Positions 24,701-56,348 of a stretch of DNA of 64,000 nt are shown piece after piece (position 1 is the first letter of the stretch; every line of letters starts with the position of its first letter). A program made the translations under genes and the position numbers. The stretch spans positions 3,468,443 to 3,532,442 of the forward strand of contig NW_003314265.1 of assembly GCF_000143415.4 (NCBI RefSeq), written 5' to 3'. The DNA comes from Selaginella moellendorffii. Lineage: Eukaryota > Plantae > Lycopodiophyta. The notes below the pieces were generated by a model, which was given only the letters and a program-made list of their open reading frames with translations, searched no databases and was not told the DNA's origin.

Positions 24701-24867
24701 CGCCTGGGACGCCGCTCCACATCGTCAAGAACTTGAGAGCTTGTGTCGACTGTCACGCGGCCGCCAAGTTCATCTCCAGGATCGTGGGCCGGAAAATCGT
24801 GGTCAGGGACTCCACTCGCTTTCATCACTTCGAGAACGGTTCATGCTCTTGCAAAGACTATTGGTGA
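21751..24867 (+). CDS. PLS-class PPR protein with E/E+ and intact DYW cytidine deaminase domain
   Basis: Intronless ORF with PG box 'KNPGCSYIEI', 'HSEKLAI', 'CVDCH' and terminal 'CSCKDYW'. First in-frame ATG at 21751. Confidence 0.96.
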   Translation: MLLLLLASKRAAASSQLQRRGLHSLAAFAGSSEDDPERISSKSYARKFADLDGVSRALSAGASYSSLLQECGHRRSLAQGKLVHSHILEQRRMHIYVENLLVQMYGKCGSVADALAVFHAIEHPNSVSWTLIVAAFARNGHYREALGYYRRMVLEGLRPDGAMFVVAIGVCSSSKDLKQGQLLHAMILETQLLEFDIILGTALITMYARCRDLELARKTFDEMGKKTLVTWNALIAGYSRNGDHRGALKIYQDMVSKSVKPDKPTFLAVLDACSKLGSLSELRMLHLDILEQKMAADLIIGTTLVSAYGKCRSLKDAEAAFSSLATKNVVSWNAMISAYCHNGRPEKSLELFHEMEPQEVKRDATTFMSVLEACAAMKSLQQGRLVHAALEGSGFDLNSFVAGTVVNMYAKCGSLQDARRAFDKMATKTTCAWTTMITAYAQLGSPRKALELYHAMEPEGMKPDAITFSSALYACSVVGDISQGREIEARTVASGYASDSIVQNALINMYSKCGSLESARKVFDRLKNRDVIAWNTMISGYAKQGAATQALELFQRMGPNDPKPNVVTFIGLLTACTNLEDLEQGRAIHRKVKEHGYESDLVIGNVLLNMYTKCSSSLEEARQVFERLRTRDVITWNILIVAYVQYGQAKDALDIFKQMQLENVAPNEITLSNVLSACAVLGAKRQGKAVHALIASGRCKADVVLENSLMNMYNRCGSLDDTVGVFAAIRDKSLVSWSTLIAAYAQHGHSRTGLEHFWELLQEGLAADDVTMVSTLSACSHGGMLKEGVQSFLSMVGDHGLAPDYRHFLCMVDLLSRAGRLEAAENLIHDMPFLPDAVAWTSLLSGCKLHNDTKRAARVADKLFELESEDEHSTVTLLSNVYAEAGRWDDVRKTRNRRAARKNPGCSYIEINDTVHEFVAGDKSHPEEELIAAEIKRLSKQMKDAGYVPDMRMVLHNVKEEEKEQMLCYHSEKLAIAYGLISTPPGTPLHIVKNLRACVDCHAAAKFISRIVGRKIVVRDSTRFHHFENGSCSCKDYW

Positions 24868-27378: not shown

Positions 27379-29571
27379 ATGTTCTATCACTGCGAGAGCG
27401 AGGCCGGGAGCTCTTGCTCCACTCCATTCGTGAGCGCGCCATCCAGCCCCAGCAGGAGTGGCACCACCAGCGCGCTCAAGACCACCACCGCCAAGAACAC
27501 CGGCACAACGAGCAAGAACAGCCTCTACTACTACTTCTCGGCGCCGTCCAGCCCGCCGCGCGATCACAAGCTCCACGCCGCCGCCAATCCGGAGCACCAC
27601 CACCAGCGCGGATTCAGCTTCACGGAATGTGAGTTCCAGTTCCACTCGCGATTCGATGGCGGCGGCGGCGGCGGTGGCGGTGGCGGATCCGGCGGCGGCG
27701 TGGTGGCGGCGCTGCCCAGTGTTCTTGTCGGAGAGCGCCGCCGCGAGGAAGAGGAGGAGGAGGAGGAGGCGATGATGGAGGACGCGGAGATGGGGGGCGT
27801 GGCGGGCTTCTACTTCAGCGCGCCCACGAGCCCGGACCGGCGGAACAAGGATCGATCGGGCAAGGGCGGCGGGATCTGGGACGAGATGCCGGGCACGCCC
27901 AAGATGATCTTTGGAGCCAATGCGGCGGCGTCGCGGGATCCATCGCCAGCGCTAGGGTTCTTCAATGCCGACTCGGATTTCGAGTTCTCGTCCAGCCGGA
28001 TGTCCGACTCCGACTCCACGATCTCCGCCCAGATGTCCTCCGCCGACGAGCTCTTCTTCAAGGGCCAGCTCCTGCCCATGAAGATCCCGCCGCCCCAGCT
28101 CACCTCCTCGGACTCGAGCGGCTCCTCCAACACCATCGCCTCCACGGATTCCAGCGACCACTGCTCCTCCTCCTCCGCCGCGGCGCCGCCGTCGCCCAGA
28201 TCCGCGCGCAAGGCCGGCGGATCCGCGTCGCCCGGGCGGATGAAATCCGCGGTGATGGGCAGCCTGTGCGGCGCCACCATGATCAAGTCGGGCTCCATCT
28301 CGGACTCCTCCTCCATCTCGGCCTCCGCCACGTCGGACTCCACGGCCAGCCGGGGACCCCCGCGGTCCCTCTCGCCGCTCCAGCTGCTCAAGAAGTACCA
28401 GTCCATGATGCTCATGATGGGCCGCCCCGCCTCCTCCAATTCCTCCTCGCCATCGCTCGCCACCTCCAATTCCTCTTCGTCCTCCTCCGGCGATCACCAG
28501 ATCCCCCGGCCCGCGAGAACTTCCTCCAAAGGCCGGACGCTGAGGGAATTGCTCCACCTGAGTAGCATGCACAAGAAGAACAAGCCGGGGCCGAGCTCTT
28601 CCAAGGCAGAGGAGGGCAAGAAAACCATCCAAGGCGCAGAATCCACAGCGAAGGAGTCCAAGGAGGCCAAGGATTCGACTCCGCCACCACCTCCGCCATC
28701 TTTGCCGGTACCTCCGAGCAAGCCCCTCGGCAAGAAGCTCGACTCCTCGGCTCTCACCAAGAGGCTGGTGGAGAAATCCCTGGTGGGCGATCACAGCAAG
28801 CGATTCACCGCCGCGAGCGCCGCACGGAAGACGCCGTCCTCGTCCTCGGCATCGGGGAATCTCCAGGGAATCGCCATCCACAAGAAGAGACTCCACAGCC
28901 TCGACCTCCAGCACAGTGGAGGATCCACCGGCGGCTACTACAGCTCCGCGAGGCGATTGCACAGCGGATCCATCGTCCCCGAGGCGGAGTTCCCCGCCAT
29001 GGCCGCAAGGCCGCACAAGGGCCGGCTGCCGGACGCGACGATCAAGAACAAGCGGCTCAACTATCACGTAGCGCACCGGCGAGGAGGGCAAGGTGGCGGT
29101 CGCGGGGGATCAATGTTTCATAGTGGGCCGATCGTGGGTGGCAAACTTGGCGGTGGTGGTATGGACTTCCAATCCGCGAGATTCACCGATCTCAATCTCC
29201 ACAGCAAAGGTGGCGGCGATCATTTCTACTACTCAAACTCGGCAGCGTCCAGTGCATGCTCGTCCCGGAACGTCAGCCCCCGGCGGAGCCGCAACAACAG
29301 CATCAACAGCAGCAGCAGCGGCAACATCCTCGGCGGCGCCACCAACGTTTCCTCCTCGTCGTCGGCGGCGGCGGCGGCGGCGGCGCAAGGTGGCGGAGGC
29401 ATATCCCTCCACGAGCTCCACTACAAGTCCCAGCAGCGGGTAAATTCCGAGGAGATGCGCCGCAAAACCTTCCTCCCATACAAGCAGGGCCTGCTGGGCT
29501 GCCTGGGCTGCGCGACCATGCGAATCGCGGGCTTGTCCAAGAGCTTGCAGCCCATGGCGTCGTCGAGGTGA
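27379..29571 (+). CDS. Ser/Gly-rich intronless protein, DUF1645 / AR781-like family
   Basis: Islands '[11 protein letters not shown]', 'YFSAPTSP', 'DFEF', '[14 protein letters not shown]', 'RSLSPL', 'HELHY...[20 protein letters not shown]' in a low-complexity matrix. Confidence 0.78.
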
Positions 29572-33661: not shown

Positions 33662-33752
33662 CATGCTAGAATATGAACACTTTGGACATTCCTACTATGT
33701 TAGAATATGAACACTTTGGACATTCCTACCATGTTAGAATATGAGCACTTTG
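33662..33752. repeat. 34-bp tandem repeat (~2.7 copies) containing the start codon of the next PPR gene
   Basis: 'atg(c/t)tagaatatga(a/g)cactttg' at 33663, 33697 and 33731. Confidence 0.92.
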
Positions 33753-35930
33753 ATCTCACATATTAAGTCATGTAAAACTCTAGTGGATGCGAAGAAACTA
33801 CATTGCTCTCTTGCGGACTCGCCCCCAAGCGTCTTTGTTTCTAACCTCCTCATCCAAATGTATGGAAGGTGCGGCGGCATCGATCACGCTCGGCGCGTGT
33901 TTGATGCCATTGACGCCAAGGACATCTTCTCGTGGAACTTGATGCTCTCGGCATATGCCGGAAACGGGTATATTCGCGAGGCCAAGCTGGTGTTCGATTC
34001 CATGCCAGACCGTGATCTTGTCTCCTGGACTAGCATTCTCACCGCGTTTCTCAAGTTTTCAAGAATGGATGATGCGAAAATGGTGTTTGATGCTATGCCC
34101 GAACAGGGAATCATTTCACTGACCACTATGCTTGCGGCATATACCCGAATAGGGGATCTTGACGGGGCATTAAGAATATATTTCCAGATGCCTTTCACGG
34201 ACTCTTTCTCTAGCACAGCAATCATCGCAGTTCTTGGGAGATATGGAAACGTGAAGGAAGCAAGAGATATATTTTATCTCATGCTTCACAGGGACATCGC
34301 GACCTGGAACGCAATGCTATCTGCATATGCCGATAACGGGCATTTGGACGAATCCGTGAGAATCCTTACCGCTATGCCGCTGCAAGATCTCGTATCCTGG
34401 AACTCGATGCTCTCGGCGCTAGCGCGGAACGACCGCCTCAAATCGGCAATCGCGCTCTTTGACGCCATGCCCGAGAGAAATCTCGTGACGGGCAACGTCA
34501 TGCTCGGAGCGCTGGGCGAGGCCGGGTGGATCGATCACGCGCTCGCCCTCTTCCGTGGAATGGATGCGCGAAACCTGATTACCTACAACACGCTACTCAA
34601 TGCGTACGCACGCCGCGGGAGTGCCGAGAGAGCGCGCGAGCTCTTTGAGCGGATGCCCGAGCGGGATCTTGGCACGTGGACGGCAGTGATCGCCGCCAGT
34701 GGGCATGTGGACGAGGCCAGGCGGGTGTTCGAATCCGCCCCCCAGCGCGATCTCATCTTGTGGAACTCGCTCCTCTCGGCAATCGCGCAGGAAGAGCGTC
34801 TGGATGACGCGCAGAGGCTCTTTGATTCCATGGAGGAGAGGGACATTGTGTCATGGAACGCGATGCTCTCGGCGATTGCGCAAAATGGGGGCTACGATCG
34901 CGCCAGGGAGTTCTTCGAGGACACGATGCCCTGTCACAACGTGATCTCGTTTAATGCAATGCTCACGGCGGCGCGGGGGATCGAAGAAACGAAATCTCTC
35001 TTTGATCGAATGAAAGCCCACAATCTTTTCTCCTGGAATGCGCTCCTAGCGGCAAGTGCCCAAGAAGGGAACTTTCAAGAGGCGAAGGGATTGTTCTATA
35101 TAATGCCCAGCAAAGATCTCGCGTCGTGGACCACCGTGCTCTCGGCAATGATCCAGGCATCGCAAATCGCCCAAGCCCAAGACCTCTTTGAGAAGATTCC
35201 CGGACCGCGCGATCGCGTCGCGTGGACAATGATGCTCGCAGCATATGCCGGGACTGGGCATCTTGACAAGGCCGTGGAACTCTTCCACGCAATGCCTGAC
35301 GTGGACGTTGTCGCATGGACAGCCATGCTGACTGGGTTTTCCCAAAACAGCGACCTGGCAAGCGCGGTCGCGTTGTTCCACTCAATGCCAGGAAGAGAAA
35401 TGGTGGCGTGGAATGCCATGCTGTGCGCATATGCCCGGAATGGGCACCTGGCGTCCGCCACGCGGACGTTCCACGCGATGCCAGCTCGGAACGTGGTCTC
35501 GTGGAACGCCATGCTGGCGGCACATTCTTCCAGCGTGGAGCTTCTTGAGCCCTATTTCATGGGAATGGTGATGGAGAGCGCCGGGGCGGACGAGACGACG
35601 TTCGCATGCGTGCTGGCGGCGCACGCCCACGGCGGAAATCTCCAATCGGCTGTGCGATGCTTGCGCGCGATGAGCGTGGATCACGGCTGGAGGCCCAAGA
35701 AGCAGCAGTATGGATGCGTGATCGGAGTGCTCGGCCGCGCCGGGTACCTGGCGGATGCCAGGGATTTGATGGAGAGCATGCCTTTGGAGCCGGATCTCCA
35801 CGACTGGGTGGGATTGCTGGGTGCGTGCCGGATCCATGGCAACAAGGAGCTCGCCGCTAGCATCGCACAGAATGCCGTGCGCTTGGGACCAGGTACTACG
35901 TCGCCTTACGTTTTGTTGTCTAGCATTTAG
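33741..35930 (+). CDS. PLS-class PPR protein with long array of 31-aa SS-type motifs, truncated E, no DYW
   Basis: Repeated 'FD.MP.RDLVSWN.ML.AYA..G.L..A' units; ends 'WVGLLGACRIHG...SPYVLLSSI*'. Confidence 0.92.
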   Translation: MSTLISHIKSCKTLVDAKKLHCSLADSPPSVFVSNLLIQMYGRCGGIDHARRVFDAIDAKDIFSWNLMLSAYAGNGYIREAKLVFDSMPDRDLVSWTSILTAFLKFSRMDDAKMVFDAMPEQGIISLTTMLAAYTRIGDLDGALRIYFQMPFTDSFSSTAIIAVLGRYGNVKEARDIFYLMLHRDIATWNAMLSAYADNGHLDESVRILTAMPLQDLVSWNSMLSALARNDRLKSAIALFDAMPERNLVTGNVMLGALGEAGWIDHALALFRGMDARNLITYNTLLNAYARRGSAERARELFERMPERDLGTWTAVIAASGHVDEARRVFESAPQRDLILWNSLLSAIAQEERLDDAQRLFDSMEERDIVSWNAMLSAIAQNGGYDRAREFFEDTMPCHNVISFNAMLTAARGIEETKSLFDRMKAHNLFSWNALLAASAQEGNFQEAKGLFYIMPSKDLASWTTVLSAMIQASQIAQAQDLFEKIPGPRDRVAWTMMLAAYAGTGHLDKAVELFHAMPDVDVVAWTAMLTGFSQNSDLASAVALFHSMPGREMVAWNAMLCAYARNGHLASATRTFHAMPARNVVSWNAMLAAHSSSVELLEPYFMGMVMESAGADETTFACVLAAHAHGGNLQSAVRCLRAMSVDHGWRPKKQQYGCVIGVLGRAGYLADARDLMESMPLEPDLHDWVGLLGACRIHGNKELAASIAQNAVRLGPGTTSPYVLLSSI

Positions 35931-35995
35931 CAAAGCCTACTATTTGCTTGTTGGTTAGCACTGCTTTGGATTCTTTCTTTTTTTTCTGCTTTCTT

Positions 35996-36337
35996 GAGAA
36001 GCTCTGGCAAATGGCACAGGGTGGACCTCGCGTTTTACGTGCTCGTGTACAACTAGGCGAGAGCTCGTACCCGAATTGTCCATCCAGTGTTTGTAAGTTT
36101 CTTCGTGTTTTCTGGGATCTCACGAAACGCAAGGTTCTGCAGCTTGAATGCGCTTCTTGCGCGCTGGTTGTCTTCGTTCTTAGTTCGCTTGTGGCTTTGT
36201 CTGCGAGCTCACCTCTCACGCAGCCGCAGACCTGCGGAAGCGATCCTCGAACTTTGGAGCTGACACAATCGAGAAAAGTCGACAACACGGGCATAGCGGT
36301 CTCTGCTAGAAAACAGGGTGGTACCTCATATCCGTAA
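35996..36337 (+). pseudogene. Highly decayed fragment of a purple acid phosphatase 3' region
   Basis: 'gagaagctctggcaaatggcacagggtggacctcgcgttttacg...acaacta' aligns by eye with 'gagaagctgtggcaaaagtacaaggtggacctcgccttctacg...acaacta' at ~38685-38742. The match downstream of ~36080 is weak. Confidence 0.6.
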
Positions 36338-36691
36338 AACTGTACGTAAGGTTTCCCTCGTTGTTTCTGGATTGGTTCTGTTTCTTTGCTTTTCTTTTTT
36401 CTTGCTAGCTAGCATCATTTTCTCGGAGCTCTCGCTTTCTACGATGCGCAAAACTTGTAATGGTTTGTGTTTTGCTGGGTCAATTGCCTGGTAACCGTTT
36501 TTATTTCTCAGAATTGCAAACGTGGCTCGTAAGAGCTAGTGTTTCAAGCGTTGGAAAATCTGCAAACAGGTTTCTTACGAGTTATTATTAGAAGAAAAGC
36601 GCATTTTCTAATCTAGACAGGAAATATACATTCTAAGGCATTTCATCGTAAATATATATCAGGGCATTGCTGCAGTAGGAATTGCGCGACA

Positions 36692-39160
36692 ATGAAAATC
36701 ATGTTCTTCATTGTTGTTAACTGTTGCTCCTTGGTGTTGTTCTCGCAGCAGCATCCTTTGCCTTCGAGACTGCCGATTGATCGCGCCGTGATAAACATTG
36801 ACAACTCTTCGTCTGTGCGAGCTTCTCCCGATGTGCTTGGCAAGGAGGTAGCAAAATTTATGGTTTCACGGACACTGATTCTTCCTTTTACTGTCCCTCA
36901 GAAAGAACATGCTGGAAACGTCCTTGTGCAATTCCAGAGGGCCTCTGGAGCGAGCGACCAGGACTGGATCGGTGTCTTCTCGCCACCAGTATTCAAGTAT
37001 AATCTTCACACTGAAAAGAGTTTTCTTCTACTTTGGATTTGATCGCTCGCAGCTCCTCCGTCTGCGTGGTCAAGACAAGAATACCCGCTTGGGGACCTTA
37101 CATCTGCAGCGCTCCCATCAAGGTACTACTACTTCTTGGTGTCATTCATTAGACGTAATACCTTTCGGTTTTGTCCTTTCAGTTTCAGTACGCAAACCAG
37201 TCGCAAGACTACGTGAGCAGCGGCAGTGGACAGCTCACGTTCCGTCTCATCAACCAGCGCGCAAACTTTTCTTTTGATTTGTTCTCCGGCTTTGCGGAGG
37301 TAAGATGATCGCAGCTCTCTATCTAACATCTGTAACTTCTCCGACTGAGCAGCCGGTGCTGATCGCCGTGTCTAACGTGGTCACCTTTGACAACTTGAAG
37401 ATGCCTTTGTACCCGAGGCTAGCTCAGGGAAGGGCTTGGAACGAGGTAAATTGTCATCGCTCGATCCTGTTATATCAAACAAAGAAGCTCAGGATCTCAC
37501 AGATGACTGTGACTTGGACGAGCAATTACCTTCCCAGCGAGGCAGCTCCATTTAACACGGCAGGCGTACGATGACAAGTATTCCTTTGTTGCTCATCCGG
37601 CCACCACGCTGTCAGTGAGTCGTGGAGATAGGTATGTTGGGTTAGCTATGGATTTTTTAATTTTTTTTTAACCGACAGTTGTTTTGAAGGAGCGCCGGCA
37701 TCCACTATCGGATGGCGAGACCCTGGGCAGAGCCATACTGGGATTATGACGGACTTATGGCCAACCACAAGGTAAGTTTATCACATGCATCGAGTTTAAC
37801 ATTCTTGTGTTTTCTTTTTTCGCTGCAGGGATAGCTTCCAAGTGCTGCAGGATGCCTCGTTTGTCATGAGCCCAAAGATGTACTTTCATTCACCCCCATT
37901 TCCTGGCCAAGAATCCTTGCAACGAGTTGTGATATTCGGTGATATGGGCACGGTACAAGTTTTTTGTTTTCTCTTTCTTCCTTTTTTTTTTCGTAAAAAA
38001 CTCTTTACAAAACCAACTTGTGCGAATTCAAGAGCACCAGCGAGATGGATCGAGAATGTACTTCGATTTGGAGCCGGGGTCTTTGAACACAACTGACACA
38101 CTTAACAACGAAATAAACGACATCGACATTATCTTCCACATTGGCGACATATCCTACGCAACTGGATATCTCTCCGAGTGGGATCAGTTCACGGAGCAGA
38201 TTGAGAATTTGTCTTCCAAAGTTCCTTACATAACAGCCAGGTATTTTACAATCTTCTTTCTCTTTTGTCGATCTAAAGTTTGCTCAAATCAATGGAAACC
38301 ATGAGCGAGATTGGCCAAACACTGGCTCTTTCTACAACAGCACCGACTCGGGAGGCGAGTGTGGTGTTGTTTCACCAACCGTGTTCAACATGCCCGTGCA
38401 AAACAGGGACAAATTCTGGTTTGTAGTTCTAAAGTCGAGAGAAAGCTAGCTGATTCACAGTTTTGTTGTTTTTTTCCTTGCAAGGTATAAAACCGACTAT
38501 GGTCTCTTCCACTTCTGCATCGCCGACTCGGAGCACGACTGGCGCGACGGCACGGAGCAGTACGAGTTCCTCGAGAATTGCTTCCGGAGCGCGGACAGGC
38601 AGAAGCAGCCGTGGCTGGTATTCATCTCTCACCGCGTCCTCGGCTACTCGTCGTGCTACCACCACCGGCGAGAGGGACAGCTTGGAGAAGCTGTGGCAAA
38701 AGTACAAGGTGGACCTCGCCTTCTACGGCCACATCCACAACTACGAGCGCACCTATCCAGTCTATAACGTGAGTGCTTTCGTGTTTTTGCCCATAGCTGG
38801 ATCTTCTCTCATACTTGGCGCTTCTCCATCGTGCAGCAAGTTCCTGCCAGTGACGAGAAAGATTTCTACTCGGGGACTTTCAACGGGACGATTCACGTAG
38901 TTGCGGGAGGCGGCGGGTTTTGGCTGAGCCAGTTCCCGGAGAGCAAGCCATCGTGGAGCTTGAATCAGGACTGCGACTTTGGCTACACCAAGCTCACCTC
39001 GTTCAATCGCTCGTCGCTGCTGTTCGAGTACAAGAAGAGCCGCGATGGCGAAGTCTATGACCAGTTTTGGATCCACAGGGAGTACAAGGACGTCCTGGGC
39101 TGCGACTCTCTCAGCATGTTTTGCCCCCTGGTTACCTCCGCCGAGAACTATCCAGCATAG
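36692..39160 (+). pseudogene. Purple acid phosphatase (PAP1/24/27, nucleotide pyrophosphatase type), probably pseudogenised
   Basis: Metal motifs GDMG, GDISY, GNHE, SHR and GHIH are present. Apparent frameshifts near 37553 ('EAAPF' to 'RQAYDDK') and 38660 ('YSSCY' to 'TTGERDSLEKLW'); acceptor before 'GNHERD' reads AA rather than AG (~38292). Confidence 0.8.
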
Positions 39161-39353
39161 CGATCACGATCATCCAGTGACCATCTTCACGATCTTCCTG
39201 ACTGACAACCAAACTTTTTGTGCTCTGCCAAAAAAAATAAAAAATTCTTTTTGAAACTGGATTTGGGTTCGAGACTCCTGTGATGCGAGGCTAACTTTCG
39301 TAACTGTTTGATTTTCTTTTTCCCGGGAAGAGGGGAAAAAAAAGCGAAGGGCG

Positions 39354-40035
39354 ATGAGGATTGTTCCAAATCGATCCGCTGGGGAGGAGAAGCTCACCTC
39401 TCCCTCGGCCGTGACCGAGAAGCGCCTGATGAGCATGAAGAAGACAGACTTGATTCGATGGCTCCAGCAACACAAGGTGGAATTGCCTCCAAAGGTAGCG
39501 TAAATCTCTCCCTCGCTCTTGTCCTCCTCTTCTTTTTTTCTAGAATCCACTCCAAGCTTTCAAATCCTTCCTCTTTCGTCAAGCAGTGAGATTCAATCGA
39601 TGTATGATCCCACATTGCCATGTCTAACTTGCAGAACCAGCTCAAGGAGTACTATCTGGGCATGGCTCTGCAAAAACACGCAGAGCTCGGAGGAGGCCAC
39701 CGGCATGTCCAAGTCGCCACCGAGAAGCCAGCTCCCGAGAGGAAAAGGGTAAGAAGAGAAAATCTTGACACATTTGTTTGCATAACGAATGAAACTTGTA
39801 GAGAGGGAGGCCGAGGCGAAGATCCAAGTCGCCTCATCCTTCCCGGTCCTCCCACCTAAGCCGGTTGCGATCCTATCTCCCGGGGAGGCCGCTGTCGGGA
39901 TTTCTAGGCGTGGGGCTCAGCAGGAGAAAGGTGCTGAGATTCATCTTTGTGGCCGCGATTGTGTTTGGCGTGCTTGGCTACGCGTACCAGGTGAGGAGAT
40001 TCCAAAGGAGGAGGAAATGGTGCTGGCAAAGATGA
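39354..40035 (+). CDS. Small 3-exon protein: LEM-like/HeH domain + AT-hook/NLS + C-terminal TM helix (emerin/LAP2-like architecture)
   Basis: Exons 39354-39494, 39635-39748 and 39802-40035, all phase 0 with GT-AG and a CTAAC branch point before exon 2, give a 162-aa ORF: MRIVPN...LMSMKKTDLIRWLQQHKVELPPKNQLKEYYLGMALQKH...ERKRRGRPRRRSKSP...RKVLRFIFVAAIVFGVLGYAYQ. Confidence 0.72.
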
Positions 40036-40497
40036 CTATATTGTTTGATGTTCTGAAACAAGATTGATTAGAAAAGATATTTTAGATCTTAATTGTTATA
40101 TAGGGAGATTAGACAACATGAGGTCGACCAAACATAAACAACAGTGTATGAGACCATGTCAAAGTCATTGAAGAGTGTGGACTCCATGCAATTAAGGCAG
40201 CCAAATTTGACAGTGATATGGTCAGGGGAGAAGAGTTTTCCTCAAAATTGCCATGCAAACGTACACAAGACAAAACAAAACTGTAGGCTCACTTCACTGA
40301 AATTCTCCCTTGCGTGTTGTATGGTAGCATCCCAATTGCTCAGTATAAAAGCCCATCCCCTCACCACAATTTTCATTCATCATTCTTCCAGTTTCATTCA
40401 TCCATCCTCATATCATTTTGATCTCGTCCCAATTGTTCCAGAGCTTATCGAGCTTGCTTTGAGAATCCTCGTTCCAGAGAGCTCGAGTTTTAGATCC

Positions 40498-41157
40498 ATG
40501 GCCATGGCGCGCGCTTCGTCAATCCTGCTTCTGAGCACCGTGATCATCGCATTCTTGGCCAGCGCAGTGGTCTCCGACCCAGATCCACTCCAAGACTTTT
40601 GCGTCGCGGATCTCACCGCATCACCGGGCGTCAATGGCTTCCCATGCAGGAACGCGTCCAGCGTCACGGTGGAGGACTTCATCTACAGAGAAATGGTGAA
40701 TCCGGCCAACATCACCGCCATGAATCGCGCGGGCGCAGTGTTTGGAACCGTGCTGAGGTTCCCCGGGATCAACACCCTTGGCCTCTCCATGGCCAGGCTC
40801 GACTTGCTACCCGAGGGGATTATCGCGCCACACACCCATCCCAGGGCCACGGAGATGGTGTACGTCGAGGAGGGGAGCGTTTACGCCGCCATTGTCACCG
40901 CGGACAACCGCTTGTTTGCACAGGTGCTGACCAGAGGCGAGGTGATGGTAATTCCGCGTGGATTGATCCACTGGCAGATGAATGTCGGCAGGAACAACGC
41001 CAAGATCATTGCTGCGCTCAACTCTCAGCTCGCGGGGACGCAATTTGTAGGGAGGTCCATGTTTGGATCGAGCCCCCAGGTGCCCGACGAGGTGCTCGAA
41101 AAGACCTTTTTTATCGACAACACTACCATCAATCAGGTCCGATCCGTGTTTGCTTGA
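40498..41157 (+). CDS. Germin-like protein (cupin), intact
   Basis: Signal peptide, 'SDPDPLQDFCVAD', germin boxes 'GIIAPHTHPRATEMVYV' and 'PRGLIHWQMN'. TATA box 'tataaa' at ~40345. Confidence 0.95.
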   Translation: MAMARASSILLLSTVIIAFLASAVVSDPDPLQDFCVADLTASPGVNGFPCRNASSVTVEDFIYREMVNPANITAMNRAGAVFGTVLRFPGINTLGLSMARLDLLPEGIIAPHTHPRATEMVYVEEGSVYAAIVTADNRLFAQVLTRGEVMVIPRGLIHWQMNVGRNNAKIIAALNSQLAGTQFVGRSMFGSSPQVPDEVLEKTFFIDNTTINQVRSVFA

Positions 41158-42217
41158 TTTAATCTTCTTTGACCTTCCAAACTGAATGCACATTCAAATT
41201 CAACATTGAAACGTTTTGTTTCTCCTTTTTAATTATTTTTTTCTATCTCAAAATTATTTAAAATAACAAAAATAAATTATATAACAAAACTTTGCTCATA
41301 AAATTCATATCCAAAAACTTTTAATTGGTTCGAGTTTTTTTCAATATTAATGTTTATTACCCTTAAAAACGTTTTTTAAAGTGTTCCTACAAGAAATGAA
41401 TTTTCTCTTTTTTATTAGAATTAATGATACTATAGATATTTTGATATAACAATTTTTTTTATAAGTTAGAATGGTTTGAAAGGATAAATTATATGCTATT
41501 AATTATTTTTATTATTTAGTTTAAAATTATATTGCACTAGTATTTATTTGTATTCTAAATAGATGAACTATTCCTATTTGAAAAAATCATTCTAAGCCAC
41601 AATAATTTTTATTTGTTATTAATTGTAGAACACTGAAACACAAGTATGTAAGGGAGAACAAGAAATTTCAAACCCCAGTGCATTCTATTGATCTCAGCAA
41701 GATCAAATAATCTATCTTCAAATTATCTAGCTTGGACTTGTTGAGCTTTGCAGTCAAAGAAAAGTTGTTACAAATAAAATGCTTTAATCCATGGTATGAC
41801 ATTTACGTCACATGGCATTGATTAAATCTATTTGTAACAATGTTGGCTAAAGGTGGAGGAGTGCAAGATCATTTGAGCACATCCATCAGTCAATTTAGAT
41901 TTACAAACATAAACATAATTTGGTTTTGGGCATGGTAAAATGTGAATTGTTTAAACATATATGTTTAACTCATAAAATAAATGTTGAACACACCAATTTT
42001 TTTAAAGGTATATATATATATTTGCATGTATTACAATTTTCTACAATTGTAGTCAAGTTAATTTTGTCTCTTCTTGGTTCGCATTATAACTTTGAACTCG
42101 GCTATAAAACTCCTTGGTAAGTATAAAGAACTAGTCTCCCAAGCACCACTCCATTCCATCTCATTCATTCAATCAAAGCCTGTGTGATCAGTTCTATCCC
42201 TATCGTAGCTAAACAAT

Positions 42218-42760
42218 ATGGCTGTATCCAAAATTATATTCTTCGTGTTCTTCACTCCGCATTGGAGACCTAAGCGCCACGAGCATCAATGGCTTCCCAT
42301 GCAGGAACGCGTCGCTGGACGACTTCATCTCTCGTGAACTCCTCCAACACCACAAACATGGATCGCTCTGGCGCGATCTTCCTTTCGCACATCCGGGCCT
42401 CAATACTTTGCATCGCTAGGCTCGATTTCCTTCCCGAGGGGATCATCCCCTCCACAGACCCATCCCAGAGCCTCGGAGATGGTACGTCGAGGAGGGGAGC
42501 GTCTACGCCGCCATTGTCACCGCGGACAACCGTTGTTCGCTCGTGTGATGAAGTGGTGATGAACAGGGACGAGGTGATGGTGATCCCGCGTGGATGGATC
42601 CACTGGCAGATAAATGTCGGCCGGACAAATGCCAAGACCATCGCCACTCTCAACTCGGCGAGGTCCATGTTTGGGTTGCGGCCGGCAGTTCCTGACGAGG
42701 TGCTCGAGAAGACTTCCTTCTTGGACGCGGTTGCGACCGATCAAGTCCGATCCAACTCTG
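42218..42760 (+). pseudogene. Germin-like pseudogene, inverted duplicate of the 45066-45713 gene
   Basis: Multiple deletions and frameshifts; retains 'ARLDFLPEGIIP', 'EVMVIPRGWIHWQINVG' and 'PAVPDEVLEKT'. Its 5' leader matches the reverse complement of ~45745-45790. Confidence 0.88.
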
Positions 42761-42871
42761 TACGAGCCAACAATGATTATTTCTTTCAGTTATTCTTTTT
42801 TCAAAAACAATAAGAGATTGATTTTTTCTCGCGAAAAAGTAAAGTGTGAAGAGACTTGGAAACGAAACTTT

Positions 42872-44164
42872 TCATTCCTCAGCTATAGGAAATACTGAAC
42901 CAATTCGATTTCTTCCATACCTGTAGCACTTCACGTTTACACCATAGGATCCCAGAACCAAATGATTGTCTTCGTCACCACAGAAGAAGCAAAGAGTATA
43001 GAGCGCTAGCTCAAACTCGGGACTCACTCCAATGAAAGAGCTTGACGCTGGCTTGCGAGCACCATTCCAAGTGAACTGGACTGTGACAAGCTGGGTATGC
43101 GAGTCAGGCTGCACAATTCCAAAAAAAAAGAAAGATGGAGATGATTGTTAAAACAAGAACACTCCAGAGCCATTTTCTACCTCGTCACCACCACGCCTCC
43201 TTGGTAGTATATAGCCTTGATAATCCAGGCTCCCCTTTGCTTCTTCAATGTAGAACTACAATGAGAGTTAAAAAAGCCATCACGACCGTCACGGAGTTGA
43301 GAAGAACAACGCATACCTGGATCCAGTTGTGGAGGCCGGAGACTTCTTCATCGTTGTTCTCCCGGTCCTTGATCTCTCCCACAAAAACGTGCTCAAACGC
43401 CGAAGAGGAGTCTCTCGTGTTATCTCGCCTGTAGAGATCGAACCATAGCCGCTGGAGCATCCGCTTGAACTCCTCCCAGTTGTCCGACTGGATGGCCCGG
43501 CTTGCAACCAGGTACTTGAACAGGTACTGGATTGGAGCCGTCCTGCTTATCTCTTCCACGAAAGCTATCTGTTCTTGCTCTTCCCTCGACGAGAACTCCT
43601 CTGCAACATCCTGATCTGCGTGATAGTTGTCCAGCAGCGCGTAGAACCTGGCGTAAGTTGGCCTTTTGAAAACGTCCTGGCTGACAAATCTGAAGAGCTC
43701 GTTGGAAGCCATATCCTCCTTGCTGTAGACTCTCTTCCCATCCCCGCAGTCGATCTCGTAGTCACGGCCAGGAACAAGGCGGTCGATGTCGAGATCCCAA
43801 AGCCGGCTGCAAGCAACGCGGTAGTCACTAAGTTCCTCGTCCGTTGGTTCGAGGTTTATAGACGAAGAGTCTACACCTTCGGAATAGTCCTGATCGCTTG
43901 CATTCCTCTTGAAAGCTTGCTTGTATTCATCTGGTGCCTGGAAACGAAAAGAAGAGAAGAGCACTCGCTAGATCTATGTAGTCTAAAGATAAATCTCACC
44001 TGCTGATGCTTGTGCTTATCCCACCTGGATCTCGGTTGCTCCTCTTCCTCCTTTCTCGAATCTGCCTCGTTTGACTGCGAATTGTCCGCATTTTGGTTTC
44101 CAGCGGCAAAATCTTGCACTGCTTCAATGCCAATGTTGATAAGTCCCTTGAGAAGTCCTTCCAT
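42872..44164 (-). CDS. EndoU / XendoU-family poly(U)-specific endoribonuclease
   Basis: 'RLWDLDIDRLVPGRDY', 'LLDNY', catalytic His/His/Lys motifs 'SSAFEHVFVGEIK', 'GLHNWIQ' and 'RKPASSSFIGVSPEFELALYT'. Likely start 'MEGLLKGLINIG' at 44164. Confidence 0.93.
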
Positions 44165-45065
44165 AGCTCCCTCTTCTGATGATACCCTGGAAGACATGCT
44201 ATCACGTCGCCTTACTTCAACATAAATGTCGCTCACGCGTTGCCCAACGCGTTCGGATATTCCACTTGAGAACGCATGGTTTCCTGTGATTGCAAAAGCT
44301 CATTAAATAGCAAACTACCGACACACAGTGGAACTTGCCTGCTTGAAAATCGTTCCTTGAACTTCTGGTGTAATAAAACGTCTCCAAGCCTGGAAGGAAG
44401 CTTTTAGCAAGATTGGATGTAATCAAAACATAAACATTTAATAAGTACATTAGCTTTGTTTGAGGATACACTTGCTTCATACCTTATCCAGGCCGCCGTC
44501 TATAGTATAGATACAATGTGGCATCCACTTTGCTCCACTGATTCTCGGTCAAGTTCTTCAACAGACTTTTATAGACAAAAGGGAAGAATCACAAACCATT
44601 GGGGTTGCAGAATGATATGCCAGAAACGTTGTTATCCTAGTCCAGTATCACCCAGAGGCGATGGTTTCGTAAGTAGACCAGAAACCACACATCAGGTTCG
44701 GGTATGATTGCTAAATTTCCCACCCAAGTGCGTGCGGCTCATTGGCGAACATCCCAGTTCATGTCAACAGTCATCTTCTTGCCAAAATCACAAAATAAAT
44801 GGAAGAAAAAGAATCAGAAACAATCATTCAGAAGAAAATGATCCGTATGCGAGTCCCCGCCGCTTCTGGAAATTAAAAAAATGAGAGAAATTTTCTTCTA
44901 CTACCTTTCGTTGTTGGCCGCGTATCGGTATCTCTAAAGCAGTTGTGGCCGATTGGGCCTAAGGCTTGCTTCTTAGACGATAAAGCTCCCTGGCCAGGAA
45001 CCCTAAATCAATCTCTTATTGTTTTGGAAAAGAATATCGAAAACAAAGAACAAGAAAATGTAGGA

Positions 45066-45713
45066 TCACAAGAAGTTGGATCGGACTTGATCAATTGCAG
45101 CCGCGTCCAAGAAGAAAGTCTTCTCGAGCACCTCGTCAGGGACCGCCGGCCGCGACCCAAACATGGACCTCGCCACAAACTGGATTCCCGGGAACTGGGA
45201 GTTGAGTGTGGCGATGATCTTGGCGTTCGTCCGGCCGACATTCATCTGCCAGTGGATCAATCCGCGCGGGATCACCATCACCTCGCCCCTGCTCATCACA
45301 CGAGCGAACAAGCGGTTGTCCGCGGTGACAATGGCGGCGTAGACGCTCCCCTCCTCGACGTACACCATCTCCGAGGCTCTGGGATGGGTGTGTGGAGGGA
45401 TGATCCCCTCGGGAAGGAAATCGAGCCTGGCGATGGAGAGTCCCAGAGTGTTGAGGCCCGGAAATCTCAGTGCTGTTCCAAAGGTCGCGCCAGCGCGATC
45501 AATGTTTGTGGTGTTGGAGGAGTTCACGAGCCCGCTGTAGATGAAGTCGTCCACCGTGACGAGCGACGCGTTCCTGCATGGGAAGCCATTGATGCTCGGC
45601 CTGGCGCTTAGATCTCCAATGCAAAAGTCTTGAAGTGGATCTGGGTCAGATGAAACCAGGGAAACGGCCAAGAATGTGAAGAGCACGAAGATTATGGATT
45701 TAGATACAGCCAT
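45066..45713 (-). CDS. Germin-like protein (cupin), intact
   Basis: Signal peptide, 'SDPDPLQDFC', 'GIIPPHTHPRASEMVYV' and 'PRGLIHWQMN'. Confidence 0.95.
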   Translation of the reverse strand: MAVSKSIIFVLFTFLAVSLVSSDPDPLQDFCIGDLSARPSINGFPCRNASLVTVDDFIYSGLVNSSNTTNIDRAGATFGTALRFPGLNTLGLSIARLDFLPEGIIPPHTHPRASEMVYVEEGSVYAAIVTADNRLFARVMSRGEVMVIPRGLIHWQMNVGRTNAKIIATLNSQFPGIQFVARSMFGSRPAVPDEVLEKTFFLDAAAIDQVRSNFL

Positions 45714-46459
45714 GGCTACGATAGACACACAAGCTCTTGTATTGCTTTGATCGAATGAATGAGATGGAATGGATTGGTGCTGGGGAGATTTGTGGGATTA
45801 TATATGCCAAGGAATACGGTGTTGCTTTTCGCGTGTGGCACTCCTAGGGAGAATTTGAAAGCCGAGTAAGTACAAGCCTACAATGTTGAATAGCAAAATC
45901 AATGTGTATTTTGTTTCTTCTGGTTGCCAAAGTTCGATGGAAGGTTCGTTGGTCGTCACGTCTGACCAATTTTACTATTTTAAAATCCAAGACAATTAAT
46001 TAACAAAAGTTTTAATTAGGAATATATTCTAGGATATTTCTCAATCTATCGTACCAAAGAATTTTTAAAAAACAAAACAGAATCTATACAAACATCATTC
46101 AATAAGACATAACTATGACAAATAATATCTGATAGTATATGGGTGGATCGTTTATTTAATCATGCACATTTTAATTTTTTTTTTAATTGCACATGAAATT
46201 ATTATATAGCAATTTAAACATAATTGTAACAATACAAAATCTCTAGGAGCCAAGAAAACCATAAAAAAATCAATCACTAATCACTCACAACAAGATTTTA
46301 TAATGCTTTATATTTCCATAAATTGTGGATTAAATTGAATCATGCAAAAAAGAGGACATGACATTGCTGCACATGTGGATGATGTGTTTGTGCACCTGTG
46401 CACCCATGAGTGTGGGATGTCCCATATAAATATTATAATACAAGTCATATGTCACATGT

Positions 46460-47030
46460 CACAGTTTGTCAAGGATGGATCCCACAAAGAACTTCATGCT
46501 GATGTCTAAGATCATAAACTTGGGGAGATCTGTAAGGTAGCTCGGGATTTCACTTGTGAGCCAATTGCCAATGATGTCAAGCTTTGTGAGATTACCATAG
46601 CATACTGTCAACCAAGGACCTAAGTAGTGTAGTCTTAAGGCCGAGCAAGAGCTCAGTGAGGTTGGAGAGATTACTGATGCTGGTTGGGATCTCACCAAAG
46701 AGGGAATTGTTCACAAAGTCAAGGATCTAGAGTGAGCACCCACACTCACTCTAGATCCTTGACCTTCTGAACAATTAAGCCTCAAGGCTAGGCACTAGAA
46801 TGTGGCTGGACAAAAGATTGCTGCTCAAATCCAGTTGCCACAATGCTGTTAGGGAGAAAATTAATGGAAGGATGTGGCTGGAGAGGCGAACAAGCTCCTC
46901 TAAACAATGATCTTGCCTAGTATATAGTTGCTAGTCAAGACTCAATAAGAAATTTGTGGAGAGGTTGAGCTTCTTGAGCTGCCCACCTAGCAATGTATCC
47001 TCCTTGTTAGAGAATTTGAGGCATATTAAG
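46460..47030 (-). pseudogene. Decayed LRR gene fragment inside an AT-rich island
   Basis: Broken frames read 'ILDFVNNSLFGEIPTSISNLSNLTELLL', 'NLTKLDIIGNWLTSEIPSYLTDLPK..ILDIS...FVGSI' and 'QLKKLNLSTNFL'; many stops and few CpG. Confidence 0.75.
46705..46776. repeat. Near-perfect inverted repeat (32-bp arms, 8-nt loop)
   Basis: aattgttcacaaagtcaaggatctagagtgag - cacccaca - ctcactctagatccttgaccttctgaacaatt; the inner 19 bp are perfect, with 2 mismatches overall. Confidence 0.95.
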
Positions 47031-48599
47031 AATTCATACATCCTTGAAAAAGAAAAACCATATCTAAACATGTTTTTGGGAGTCATTAAAAAATTGAAGC
47101 ACATATATATTTTAAATTCATATATCTTATAGTGTAATTCAATGTTTTGGCACAACCTCCACCCAAAGTACGTGTGGTGTACCTCACAGAGTGATTCATA
47201 ATTTTTAATAACAGATATAATAAGCAATATATAAATTAGTATTTTTTAATAATGTATAAATAAAAAATATTCATAAAAATTAAGAATTCACAAAAAAAAA
47301 CATTTAAATATAAATAATGCAATATTACATATATTCAAAAAATTAAGTGAGGAAGTATTAAAAAAATGGTGCAAAAGAACGCTAATGGAGTTCCTGAACA
47401 AATTGTTGTACCGAAACTAATGTCTGAAATGTTAGTCCCAAGAAAATAACATAAGTTAATAAAAATAACATAAGAAAAAAGATCACATTTAGATAAATGA
47501 CATAATAATAAATAATATGTTAATAGGCCATTTCTTTTGGGTGAGCTGGCTTGGCTATAGCTGTTCTAATTAGCATCTAGAGCTTTCTTGGTGAAGAGGG
47601 AGAGAGCAACACCAGCTAGAGCTTTCCAAAGTACAACAATGGGAAAATTGGATAGAATTAAAGCACCAAGTGAGAGTACTATTGATACCTCCTCTGACGC
47701 TGCTCATGGCAAAATCCAGCCCCAGCTGCTGCCCGCTAGGGATCTATCCCCGCAATGCTGCAGCGATCTTCCTCCCGTATAGATTAATCTTTCCCCCCTC
47801 TTTGCTACCTGGAATCACGCATCGCGAGAAAGAGCACAAGCACGAGGAAGTCATACCCGTACATCATGGCCAGAAGAACTCAACAGGAACTCGTGGCGCA
47901 TGAAAAAGGCTGGTTCGCTCGTCAAGTTCTTCGTACTGATAAGCGCACAGAGTTTCCATGCAGCCATAAAGTGATAAATGGCTAGGAGACTAGCTGGAAA
48001 AGAGCTAGCATGACAATGGCTCAAGGCGATGACAACGCGGCCTAAGTGTCAATCTATAGGCAGCCAAGAAAGACTGTGTCAGCTCCCCCACGCTGAGAGA
48101 CATTGCCACGCACTACTCTCCACTGGGAGTGGAGCTTTTTTGCTGCTGCTGCAACGCAGAGGTCGGTGGTGAAAGGATTTTTATATATGCCTAATTACAA
48201 GGATTTACAGTAAAGGTCCGCACAAGAAAACAGAGAATATCTGCTCTATCATACAACCCAGCTGAGAAATCCACAAAGATTTTCATTCGCCAACTAGCTA
48301 GAGTTTTGAGGATTACTATATTCAACTATTATATTGTAATTTTTATGCTTGTTGGATATCGGGAGTAACGAGTGTCCATAGAAAATGCTGATTTCTGGTC
48401 TTTGTGTGTTGGAAGATTCATCTTTCCTGTATAGAAATAGAAGAGAAATAATTAAGATCTATATTAATTAATGAAACTAATAATAATTCCAGGCGCTTAT
48501 AATTTAGTTTATCTAGGTAAATAAATTTAATATCATAACGGAACATAGTATAAGTTTCCATTTAAACGGTGCTAGAGCGGAAGAAAGAGAAACAGGGGG

Positions 48600-54314: not shown

Positions 54315-56348
54315 ATGCCGCCGCCGCTAAGCTTGCCCGACTCGATCAGGCACTGCGGCCATGCTAGGGATCTCTCGCTGGGCCGCGAGCTCCACGCTCG
54401 GATCCTCCGCGATGGCGCTCTCCACTCCAATGTCTTCCTCGCCAATCTCCTCGTCGAGATGTATGGCCGCTGCGGCGCTGTGGAGGAGGCGGCGGCGCTC
54501 TTCTCCGCCACCGCTGCCAAGAACTCCTTCAGCTGGAATCTCATGATCGCGGCCCTGATCCGCAATGGCCAGCTCCAGCGCGCGCGCGATCTCTTCCACC
54601 AGATGCCGCAGCAAGATGCCGTGGCCGGGAATTCCCTGATCAAGGCATACGCCGATCGGGGGGAGATCCAAGAGGCAGAGTCGCTGTGCTTGGCGATGCC
54701 CAGGAGGGATCTAGTGTCGAGCAACACGATGCTCCGGGCGTACTCCACCGGCGGGGATTTCGATCGCGCCAGAGAGTTTTTCGATGCCATGGCCGATCGG
54801 GACGCGGTGTCTTGGAATGTGATGATCCAGGCGTGCGTCACTGCCGGAGATCTCGAGCAAGCGATTGATCTCTTCAATCGATGCCCGGCCCCGGATATCG
54901 TCTCTAGAACCGCGATGATCCAAGCGTTTGCCCAGGACGGAGACCTTGATAGCGCCAAAAGAATGTTTGATTCCATGCCAGAGATCAACATAATCTCCTG
55001 GAACACGATTCTCACTGCGATTTCCCAGCGCGGCCAGATCGAGAGGGCAAGGAAAGTGTTCGATCAGATCCCACATCCAGATCTAGTTTCCTGGAATTGC
55101 ATGCTTGGAGCGTATGCCCAAGCCGGGCATCTGGATCTCGCGCTAGAGCTCTTCTCGCGAATGCCACTGACGAGCTTGATTTCCTGGAACACAATGATCT
55201 CCGGATTTAGCCACAGCGGCAACCACCGCGCCGCGATGTCGATCTTCCACAAGATGCCCGCCCGCGACACAGTCTCCTGGAATCTGGCAATCGCGGCGCT
55301 TGCCCAGGCCGGGAATCTTCACGAGGCCGCCAAGATCTTCAAGAAAATGCCGCAGCGTGACATCGTCTCCTGGAACACGATCCTCCAGGCGCAAGCGTCG
55401 GATGGAGCGGTCGAGCAAGCGCGATTGATCTTCGACGCCATGCCCGAGCACGATTCCCTCTCCTGGAACGCGATCCTGGGCTCGTACACCTGCGCGGGGC
55501 AAATCGCCCGCGCGGAAGAGATCTTCGCGAGAATGCCGGCCAAGAACCTCGCATCGATGAGCGCCATGGTGTCCGCGCACGCCATGGCTGGAAACCTCGA
55601 TCACGCGCTAGTGCTCCTGGACGCCATGCCCGAGTGGAACTCGGTCTCGTGGAACGCGATGATCGCCGCGGCGTCGTCCGATGTGGAGCTGGCCGGCTGG
55701 CTCTTCGATCGGACGGCGGAGAAGGACGTGGTGACGTGGACGGCCATGGTCGCGGCTTATGCCGGGAGCGGGCATCTGGAGGACGCGAGGAGGGCCTTCT
55801 GGAGGATGGACTGCGAGCGCGACGTGGTGGCGTGGACGGCCCTGATCCACGGCGAGGCCATCAACGGCGGCCTGGTAACGGCCAGGATGGTTCTTGATCG
55901 AATGCAATGTCCCAATGCGGTGTCCTGGAATGGGGTCATTCAAGCGTTTGCCCAGAACGGGAATCTCCGCGAGGCGCTGGAAATCCTCCGCGAGATGTGT
56001 GCCGAGGGATTGGCGCCGGATGGCGTGAGCTTCATCGGCGCGCTGGCGGCGTGCAGCTACATCGGCCTCGTCCAGGGCGCCAAGCGCTGCCTGTGCTCGA
56101 TGATCGTGGATTTCGGCGTGATTCCGGGCGTGGCGCACTACCACTGCGTGTTGGACGCGCTGGGGCGGGCAGGGAAGCTCGGCGACGCGGAGGAGCTGCT
56201 CAGGGGGATGCCTCATTCTCCCAACGACGCTACCTGGACGAGCCTGCTGGGATCTTCCAAGATCCATTGCGATCCGGCGCGGGCGGCCGAGGCGGCCAGG
56301 AAGCTGGATCCGACGAACGCAGCCCCATATCTAATGCTTGCAAGATGA
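54315..56348 (+). CDS. PLS-class PPR protein, SS-type array, truncated E, no DYW
   Basis: 31-aa 'F..MP.RD.VSWN' repeats; ends 'WTSLLGSSKIHCD...AAPYLMLAR*'. Confidence 0.92.
   Translation: MPPPLSLPDSIRHCGHARDLSLGRELHARILRDGALHSNVFLANLLVEMYGRCGAVEEAAALFSATAAKNSFSWNLMIAALIRNGQLQRARDLFHQMPQQDAVAGNSLIKAYADRGEIQEAESLCLAMPRRDLVSSNTMLRAYSTGGDFDRAREFFDAMADRDAVSWNVMIQACVTAGDLEQAIDLFNRCPAPDIVSRTAMIQAFAQDGDLDSAKRMFDSMPEINIISWNTILTAISQRGQIERARKVFDQIPHPDLVSWNCMLGAYAQAGHLDLALELFSRMPLTSLISWNTMISGFSHSGNHRAAMSIFHKMPARDTVSWNLAIAALAQAGNLHEAAKIFKKMPQRDIVSWNTILQAQASDGAVEQARLIFDAMPEHDSLSWNAILGSYTCAGQIARAEEIFARMPAKNLASMSAMVSAHAMAGNLDHALVLLDAMPEWNSVSWNAMIAAASSDVELAGWLFDRTAEKDVVTWTAMVAAYAGSGHLEDARRAFWRMDCERDVVAWTALIHGEAINGGLVTARMVLDRMQCPNAVSWNGVIQAFAQNGNLREALEILREMCAEGLAPDGVSFIGALAACSYIGLVQGAKRCLCSMIVDFGVIPGVAHYHCVLDALGRAGKLGDAEELLRGMPHSPNDATWTSLLGSSKIHCDPARAAEAARKLDPTNAAPYLMLAR

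Follow-up and report, generated by a model that had tools for sequence, protein, structure and literature searches.

Domains of the helix-extension-helix (HeH) class, among them the LEM-like and SAP domains, bind DNA directly (PMC5630835). The LEM-like domain and the MSC domain, both of which do so, predate LEM; the LEM domain itself is restricted to Holozoa, and chromatin tethering mediated by BAF is likely restricted to Metazoa (PMC5630835). Heh1/Src1, Heh2, Lem2 and Man1 act at the inner nuclear membrane as tethers of chromatin and telomeres that do without BAF (PMC5630835, PMC6240307). Plants retain MAN1 without its LEM domain (PMC9980628), and next to this LEM-less MAN1 they have SUN, KASH-like and CRWN/NMCP proteins, with no described membrane protein whose chromatin-binding head is of the LEM, LEM-like or HeH type (PMC9980628, PMC5630835). 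Here we describe a locus of the lycophyte Selaginella moellendorffii, located within a stretch of 64,000 nucleotides of contig NW_003314265.1 (positions 3,468,443 to 3,532,442; hereafter the window), where the GenBank gene model for 'hypothetical protein SELMODRAFT_406014' (150 aa, window 39354-40112) would encode a small protein with an N-terminal HeH domain, a basic AT-hook-like cluster and a C-terminal transmembrane (TM) helix. We put the probability that this is a real S. moellendorffii gene encoding such a tail-anchored protein at roughly 0.45.

The putative protein resembles each of the described systems in part. In LAP2 (PF08198; 1H9E/1GJJ), too, a helix / extended loop / helix of ~40 residues is N-terminal and a TM helix C-terminal; LAP2 differs in its length of ~450 aa, in a further LEM domain that binds BAF, in a lamin-binding region and in the absence of an AT-hook. 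Emerin (2ODC, 6GHD) shares the N-terminal HeH-class domain, the long disordered linker and the one TM helix, placed at the very C-terminus. Its LEM domain acts through BAF, whereas the Selaginella protein is ~100 residues shorter, carries the AT-hook, shows 12% identity to emerin LEM in structural superposition, and has no match to the LEM profile PF03020 at E<=10. The chain of Heh1/Src1, Heh2, Lem2 and Man1 runs from an N-terminal HeH domain through a nuclear localization signal (NLS) and an unfolded linker to the membrane span, an order that is comparable to the one found here. These proteins are, however, several hundred residues long, span the membrane with two TM helices and carry an MSC winged-helix domain at the C-terminus, while the Selaginella protein has one tail anchor, and Pfam returns neither an MSC match nor, at E<=10, a match to the HeH profile PF12949.

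Two further groups are of relevance for the individual parts. SAP domains (PIAS/SIZ1, MKL1, Tho1, Ku70) and Rho_N domains are common in plant proteins and give the best structural superpositions, at the level of the fold only. The scaffold-attachment DNA to which SAP domains bind is AT-rich, which would suit a neighbouring AT-hook, but the inter-helix loop of the Selaginella domain is longer (11 residues) and without the conserved Gly of SAP, and neither the SAP (PF02037) nor the Rho_N (PF07498) profile is matched at E<=10. To our knowledge, no SAP or Rho_N family consists of tail-anchored proteins. With the AT-hook proteins (HMGA, plant AHL) the basic cluster shares an R-G-R-P core flanked by Arg/Lys; unlike in those proteins, the motif occurs as a single copy, is not accompanied by a PPC/DUF296 domain and is not matched by the Pfam AT_hook profile (PF02178) at E<=10, and it may equally be a plain NLS.

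Three exons, each a multiple of 3 nt in length and in phase 0, join on the + strand into an open reading frame (ORF) of 162 aa when exon 3 is read from 39802 through to 40035, and all intron boundaries are GT..AG (Table 1). Coordinates, frames and splice sites agree with those proposed in an earlier reading of the window from its letters, the sequence-only reading. This reading had also noted that intron 1 splits the domain and thereby makes it invisible among the six-frame ORFs: the break indeed falls between K47 and N48, and the longest stop-free stretch containing any one exon amounts to 83 aa. GenBank's models for the two haplotypes agree in the start codon and in the first two junctions, including the exon 1 donor AAG/GTAGCG at 39494/39495. 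The acceptor of intron 1 reads ...CTAACTTGCAG/AAC, and other AGs are found inside this intron at 39543, 39556, 39583, 39586 and 39590. Exon 2 ends with the donor AGG/GTAAGA, and at the acceptor of intron 2 there is a tandem AG (AGAG), the second AG being located 2 nt on, at 39802-39803.

The composition of the locus follows these borders, with a GC content of 0.54-0.59 in the exons versus 0.44 and 0.32 in the introns; by codon position, the spliced ORF has a GC3 of 0.69, a GC1 of 0.54 and a GC2 of 0.49. When scored with a codon log-likelihood for which seven other genes of the window served as training set, the spliced ORF reaches +34 bits in frame versus -95/-34 bits out of frame. Furthermore, each exon reaches its best score in precisely the frame that is joined by splicing (+14.9 bits for exon 1, +14.0 for exon 2 and +5.1 for exon 3), and every frame of the introns and of either flank scores negative. 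The observation of a spliced gene is correct and goes beyond chance, and we consider it fairly probable that the locus is a real, expressed gene. The claim that the gene had been hidden did not hold up, as GenBank models are present on both haplotypes: SELMODRAFT_406014, on scaffold GL377569.1 (assembly GCA_000143415.2), and SELMODRAFT_414039, its allele on scaffold GL377587.1. The locus is already annotated, though uncharacterised, and the database entry for SELMODRAFT_406014 has no Pfam family on record.

What does the spliced protein look like? In AlphaFold2 single-sequence models built on the annotated 150-aa protein, the mean predicted local distance difference test (pLDDT) score is 68, and two parts are ordered, residues 21-64 and a helix spanning residues 126-147. 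For residues 21-64 the model has helices at 22-27 and 30-39, a loop of 11 residues and a further helix at 51-64, and when the domain is modelled in isolation (residues 16-70) it reaches a pLDDT of 84.2 and a predicted TM-score (pTM) of 0.70. The predicted model matches the helix / extended loop / helix fold of ~40 residues seen in LEM-like domains. Since this confident fold exists only once intron 1 is removed, it provides the best internal evidence for the exon 1/2 junction. Nearly all Foldseek matches at low root-mean-square deviation (< ~2.5 Å) fall within one structural class, LEM/SAP/Rho_N (HeH). They include the Rho N-terminal domain (1.8-2.0 Å over 44-48 columns, query-normalised TM-score (TMq) 0.64-0.66), the LEM domain of emerin (6ghd, 2odc; 2.2-2.5 Å over 40-41 columns, target-normalised TM-score (TMt) 0.64-0.70) and the SAP domain of PIAS1 (1.7 Å over 43 columns). 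Other neighbours were the SAP domain of MKL1, those of Tho1 and rice SIZ1 at 3.2-4.2 Å, the C-terminal domains of MANF/CDNF, and T4 endonuclease VII. As far as the fold is concerned, the sequence-only reading is supported: a HeH domain across the exon 1/2 junction is confidently predicted, with Rho_N, emerin LEM and SAP as its neighbours. Provided that the gene is real, residues 21-64 very likely adopt a HeH fold; on these models the fold class is reasonably supported, but the specific family is not.

Downstream of this domain follow, in order, 20 residues, the KRRGRPRRR cluster, ~35 disordered Ser/Arg/Pro-rich residues, the TM helix and a final 3-15 residues. The RGRP basic cluster had been reported as an AT-hook/NLS and is indeed present at residues 84-92, across the exon 2/3 junction, with a GRP core flanked by Arg/Lys, although without a Pfam match its identification as an AT-hook is one at the level of the motif only. 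Residues 65-125 are predicted to be disordered (pLDDT 50-56 for 71-120). The hydrophobic helix that had been noticed near the C-terminus, residues 129-147, coincides with the predicted helix 126-147, and it is the only hydrophobic segment in the 150-aa (or 162-aa) protein, the N-terminus being polar and disordered. With a single TM helix this close to the C-terminus, the protein would belong to the tail-anchored class, its topology being read from the sequence. The order of HeH domain, basic/NLS-like cluster, unfolded linker and tail anchor does resemble the emerin/LAP2beta layout that had been put forward; the LEM-like membership that was part of the same claim is not supported, the score for that family being 14.6 versus the 28.6 bits required.

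From these parts a mechanism can be proposed. Emerin is itself a tail-anchored protein, and small proteins of the inner nuclear membrane are sorted by diffusion and retention. Likewise, the Selaginella protein may be inserted post-translationally into the membrane of the endoplasmic reticulum (ER), with its functional part facing the cytosol or nucleoplasm. This non-lumenal part comprises ~20 disordered residues, the HeH domain (21-64), KRRGRPRRR and the unfolded Ser/Arg/Pro-rich linker of ~35 residues; at ~14 kDa it would be small enough to diffuse to the inner nuclear membrane. There it could be retained through direct DNA binding by the HeH domain and the AT-hook, the latter contacting the minor groove of AT-rich DNA, while the basic cluster might double as an NLS. 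Overall, this would amount to a minimal membrane-chromatin tether of the LAP2beta/emerin/Heh type for which BAF is not needed. The product of SELMODRAFT_406014 is probably a lineage-restricted tail-anchored membrane protein of 150-162 aa, for which a role as membrane-DNA tether is plausible. Given a real gene and a HeH fold, the chance that it tethers DNA at the nuclear envelope comes close to even, but the full mechanism at the nuclear envelope is doubtful.

Several observations weigh against a real gene for a chromatin tether, and they are best discussed together with the alternatives that they favor. The first of these is that the ORF is spurious or very young (de novo), i.e. an ab initio model between the phosphatase and germin-like genes that is unexpressed or without conserved function, in which the HeH/LEM-like appearance is coincidental. 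One argument for this is that no homologue other than the two S. moellendorffii alleles came up, be it in protein clusters, representatives, or metagenome and viral contigs. Word-index searches of 5.8 billion clusters, which require shared 5-mers, were performed with the exon-2 stretch, residues 1-76 of SELMODRAFT_414039 and the whole of SELMODRAFT_406014, in length windows of 46-145, 58-185 and 83-262 aa (together 46-262 aa), and returned only the two alleles. Nor did an exhaustive HMMER search, run with exon 3 on 1.84 billion representatives without restriction of length, return a relative, and the scans of metagenome and viral contigs returned none either. Two Ser-rich repeat proteins that matched exon 3 among the representatives were set aside as compositional artefacts. 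It should be noted, however, that the annotated protein itself, with 63 identical residues, likewise went unreturned by the HMMER search even though it is in the clustered collection, so that absence there is weaker evidence than it appears. Moreover, because the HeH domain was searched only by shared 5-mers, among proteins of <=262 aa, the orphan status is provisional. The suggestion of an ancestrally retained protein nevertheless finds no backing here, the allele on the second haplotype being the one relative found in these collections. The cluster of each allele has a single member, from one contig, derived from genome annotation, and the collection holds no transcript-derived copy. In the literature we found no description of SELMODRAFT_406014, of SELMODRAFT_414039, or of plant membrane proteins with LEM-like, HeH or SAP domains, and this gap, like that in the Pfam annotation, counts in favor of a spurious ORF.

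A second argument for a spurious or young ORF comes from the two haplotypes that the sequenced plant carries. The exon 1/2 junction and the HeH domain of SELMODRAFT_414039 are identical to those of SELMODRAFT_406014, but in the exon 2 linker behind that domain the GL377587.1 allele carries a frameshifting insertion of 8 nt next to window position 39724. The insertion site (window 39722-39724 versus 6368-6378 of the retrieved GL377587.1 stretch, L002) resembles a local duplication of CGCCACC and has three substitutions alongside, within exon 2. As annotated, the allele shifts frame and ends after 106 aa, losing both the AT-hook and the TM helix, and the insertion is the reason that the locus has two very different models in GenBank, one of 150 and one of 106 aa. 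Use of the second tandem AG at the intron 2 acceptor, 2 nt on, would by our inference restore the frame of this allele, and the resulting 164 aa would include GGRPRRR as well as the TM helix. The remaining differences between the haplotypes within the coding sequence (CDS), four synonymous and four non-synonymous, are too few to show selection. None of the non-synonymous ones fall within the HeH domain; of those in the TM helix, the changes at 39969 and 39978 are synonymous, and the one at 39931 is conservative, turning the first residue, V129, into L.

The position of the gene and its coding signal provide additional points in favor of a spurious ORF. Between the phosphatase stop codon (39160) and the candidate ATG there are only 194 nt, which include an AATAAA at ~39236, and this spacer would have to accommodate both the upstream polyadenylation signal and the promoter of the candidate gene. 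Within the same spacer (window 39229-39283) lies the A-run of which AATAAA is a part; on the other haplotype (L002 ~5886-5931) it is mostly a T-run instead, adjoining an indel of 13 nt. The codon score is weak, at 0.21 per codon versus 0.34-0.56 in the training genes and an independent exon, and weakest of all in exon 3. Furthermore, conservation between haplotypes does not extend to mini-exon 4 of the annotated model. Conversely, chance is unlikely to yield a domain of known fold, with a pLDDT of 84 and a pTM of 0.70, that depends on the precise removal of an intron. A clean TM helix right at the C-terminus, the preference of all three exons for the spliced frame over negative introns and flanks, the fall in GC in both introns, and the HeH domain without amino-acid change between haplotypes are likewise not what a spurious ORF would predict. 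All in all, we regard this explanation as unlikely.

The second alternative is that the gene encodes a real tail-anchored protein with another role, in which the HeH domain and basic region are cytosolic, on the ER or on the mitochondrial or plastid outer membrane, and bind an RNA or protein partner or tether organelle nucleoids, the latter being analogous to plastid PEND. HeH modules bind such partners in Rho (RNA), in MANF/CDNF (protein) and in PIAS, and in Foldseek the Rho N-terminal domain and the C-terminal domains of MANF/CDNF are as close as LEM, which is also a caveat for the mechanism proposed above. Here, the 3' end of the gene is of importance, as two tails compete. The GenBank 150-aa model has the same start and first two junctions as the 162-aa model, then uses a donor at 39990/39991 and an acceptor at 40103/40104, and ends in ..YAYQGD. 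The sequence-only reading had pointed to an alternative donor at ~39990, which is in fact used in this model; the tail it expected, ...YAYQID, would need an acceptor at 40062/40063 and is replaced by ...YAYQGD. The AG (40102-40103) that serves as acceptor for mini-exon 4 is replaced by AA in the other haplotype, which makes the GenBank mini-exon doubtful. The read-through tail of the 162-aa model, on the other hand, is strongly basic (QVRRFQRRRKWCWQR), with a charge of +7, and its 45 nt (39991-40035) are identical between the haplotypes.

In plant tail-anchored proteins, a C-terminal tail that is basic speaks for organelle outer membranes no less than for the ER or nuclear envelope, and in combination with a moderately hydrophobic TM helix it sorts them to the former. 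The core of the TM helix is short, with 16 residues after R131. The 3' end is uncertain, and if the +7 read-through tail is the true one, it would favour mitochondrial or plastid outer membranes. Against such a location speak the short acidic tail of the annotated model (QGD), which is typical of ER/nuclear-envelope tail anchors, and the fact that no obvious transit peptide is seen, for which no formal test was made. Against a partner other than DNA speak the RGRP core, a minor-groove motif, together with the resemblance of the basic cluster to a classical NLS, as well as the Thymopoietin/LEM-like profile, that of a DNA-binding family, being the best Pfam match in every scan. We consider this alternative improbable.

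This leaves the relationship to LAP2 itself. The LAP2 string given in the sequence-only reading is exact, corresponding to residues 10-43 of PDB 1H9E (11-44 of 1GJJ), and its gapless alignment to the Selaginella domain was counted correctly, at 11 of 34 identities including V-x-L-P-x3-Q-x-K-x2-Y. This alignment has a BLOSUM62 score of 37 and a shuffle p of 1e-5 in the fixed register, or 5e-5 for any register of the shuffled whole protein, values that are pairwise and uncorrected for the choice of LAP2 among all domains. Among the 24,736 Pfam families, Thymopoietin/LEM-like (PF08198) gives the best match in each scan, and no other match is plausible; on the domain it reaches 13.0-14.6 bits (E 0.027-0.08), in register over profile positions 19-42 of 48. 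This is about half of the gathering score of 28.6 bits, and on the whole 150-aa protein the match drops to 10.5 bits (E 0.52). A Tox-REase-9 match at E 0.14 was treated as chance, as was a match of FeoB_associated to the TM helix, the single exons giving no other match. A phmmer search with the domain against PDB sequences did not recover LAP2 and gave matches at chance level only (TPR designs, methylglyoxal synthase). No Foldseek match against the PDB was significant (all E >= 0.85), as is to be expected for a domain of 40-50 residues, and LAP2 1H9E is absent from the best 50. Membership of the LEM-like family, which had been claimed from the alignment, is not supported, and kinship with animal LAP2/emerin is not demonstrated; it is partly supported that the resemblance lies at the level of working in a like manner. 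That the protein is a true LAP2/Heh LEM-like homologue, inherited from the eukaryotes' last common ancestor (LECA) and kept as an emerin/LAP2-like protein of the inner nuclear membrane, is very unlikely: although PF08198 is matched specifically and in register, the identities to 1H9E, the fold class and the domain order agree, and the literature traces the LEM-like domain to LECA (PMC5630835), the score is half of the threshold, LAP2 is missed by phmmer and is not among the best 50 Foldseek matches, the clusters searched (46-262 aa) hold no intermediate or orthologue from a plant, alga or other eukaryote, and HeH domains are short, with sequence patterns that easily converge. Equally improbable is a minimal BAF-independent lycophyte tether (LEM-like/HeH, AT-hook, tail anchor) in which the HeH domain is a true homologue of the LEM-like domain of LECA age. 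If this were the case, no plant membrane protein with that domain would have been known before, and the gap that results from the loss of the N-terminal LEM/HeH module of plant MAN1 would be filled.

Table 1. Positions of the SELMODRAFT_406014 gene, its predicted protein features and its two neighbours, in window coordinates
Feature	Position	Strand	Description
Exon 1	39354-39494	+	47 codons; ATG at 39354, disordered N-terminus, first half of HeH domain (helices 22-27 and 30-39, start of loop)
Intron 1	39495-39634	+	140 nt, GT..AG, GC 0.44
Exon 2	39635-39748	+	38 codons; second HeH helix (51-64), Gly/His linker, start of basic cluster (..ERKR)
Intron 2	39749-39801	+	53 nt, GT..AG, GC 0.32
Exon 3, portion common to both models	39802-39990	+	63 codons; RGRPRRR, Ser/Arg/Pro-rich linker, TM helix, end ..GYAYQ
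Competing segment	39991-40035	+	read-through tail of 162-aa model (VRRFQRRRKWCWQR, stop 40033-40035) or 5' part of GenBank intron 3
Mini-exon 4, GenBank 150-aa model (doubtful)	40104-40112	+	9 nt: GD, stop
HeH domain (predicted), residues 21-64	39414-39494 and 39635-39685, intron 1 between	+	AlphaFold2 pLDDT 81-89 in full protein
KRRGRPRRR, AT-hook-like / NLS-like cluster, residues 84-92	39743-39748 and 39802-39822, intron 2 between	+	sequence reading
C-terminal TM helix (predicted), residues 129-147	39931-39987	+	Kyte-Doolittle 19-residue mean 2.07; AlphaFold helix 126-147, pLDDT 70-91
Purple acid phosphatase gene	CDS 35565-39160	+	upstream neighbour
Germin-like cupin gene	40504-41157	+	downstream neighbour

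The candidate gene is thus located between a purple acid phosphatase and a germin-like cupin gene, the neighbouring models being taken from the GenBank annotation of the GL377569.1 stretch that corresponds to window 34504-47157 (L001). A GenBank model of 781 aa that enters this stretch from upstream (window ~34504-36263) overlaps the first 700 nt of the phosphatase model on the same strand, and one of the two is probably wrong. A TATA-like TATAAAAG at ~40346 lies upstream of the first cupin gene (40504-41157). Further on, a second germin-like cupin gene is found at 44233-45713 (- strand), and an XendoU-family endoribonuclease gene at 42872-44197 (- strand) is flanked by both cupin genes. The window as a whole is gene-dense and rich in genes for pentatricopeptide repeat (PPR)/DYW proteins, as expected for S. 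moellendorffii. Four long intron-less PPR genes are present on the + strand (34-2619, 21736-24864, 33741-35927 and 54315-56345), one of them with E and DYW deaminase domains and one with an E motif, typical of the expansion of RNA-editing factors in Selaginella. An intron-less ORF of 730 aa at 27379-29568 (+) has the plant-specific DUF1645, at its C-terminus, as sole Pfam match (E 3e-7).

The weight of these findings is limited by their coming from one species, with one haplotype frameshifted and every functional step inferred, which makes the locus a moderately interesting lead rather than a discovery. Should the tail-anchored HeH and AT-hook protein be what we propose, it would provide, in a plant, a very small and easily tested model for the direct tethering of DNA to a membrane. 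Were it to have orthologues, it would furthermore bear on the question of how chromatin is kept at the nuclear periphery when lamins and BAF are lacking.

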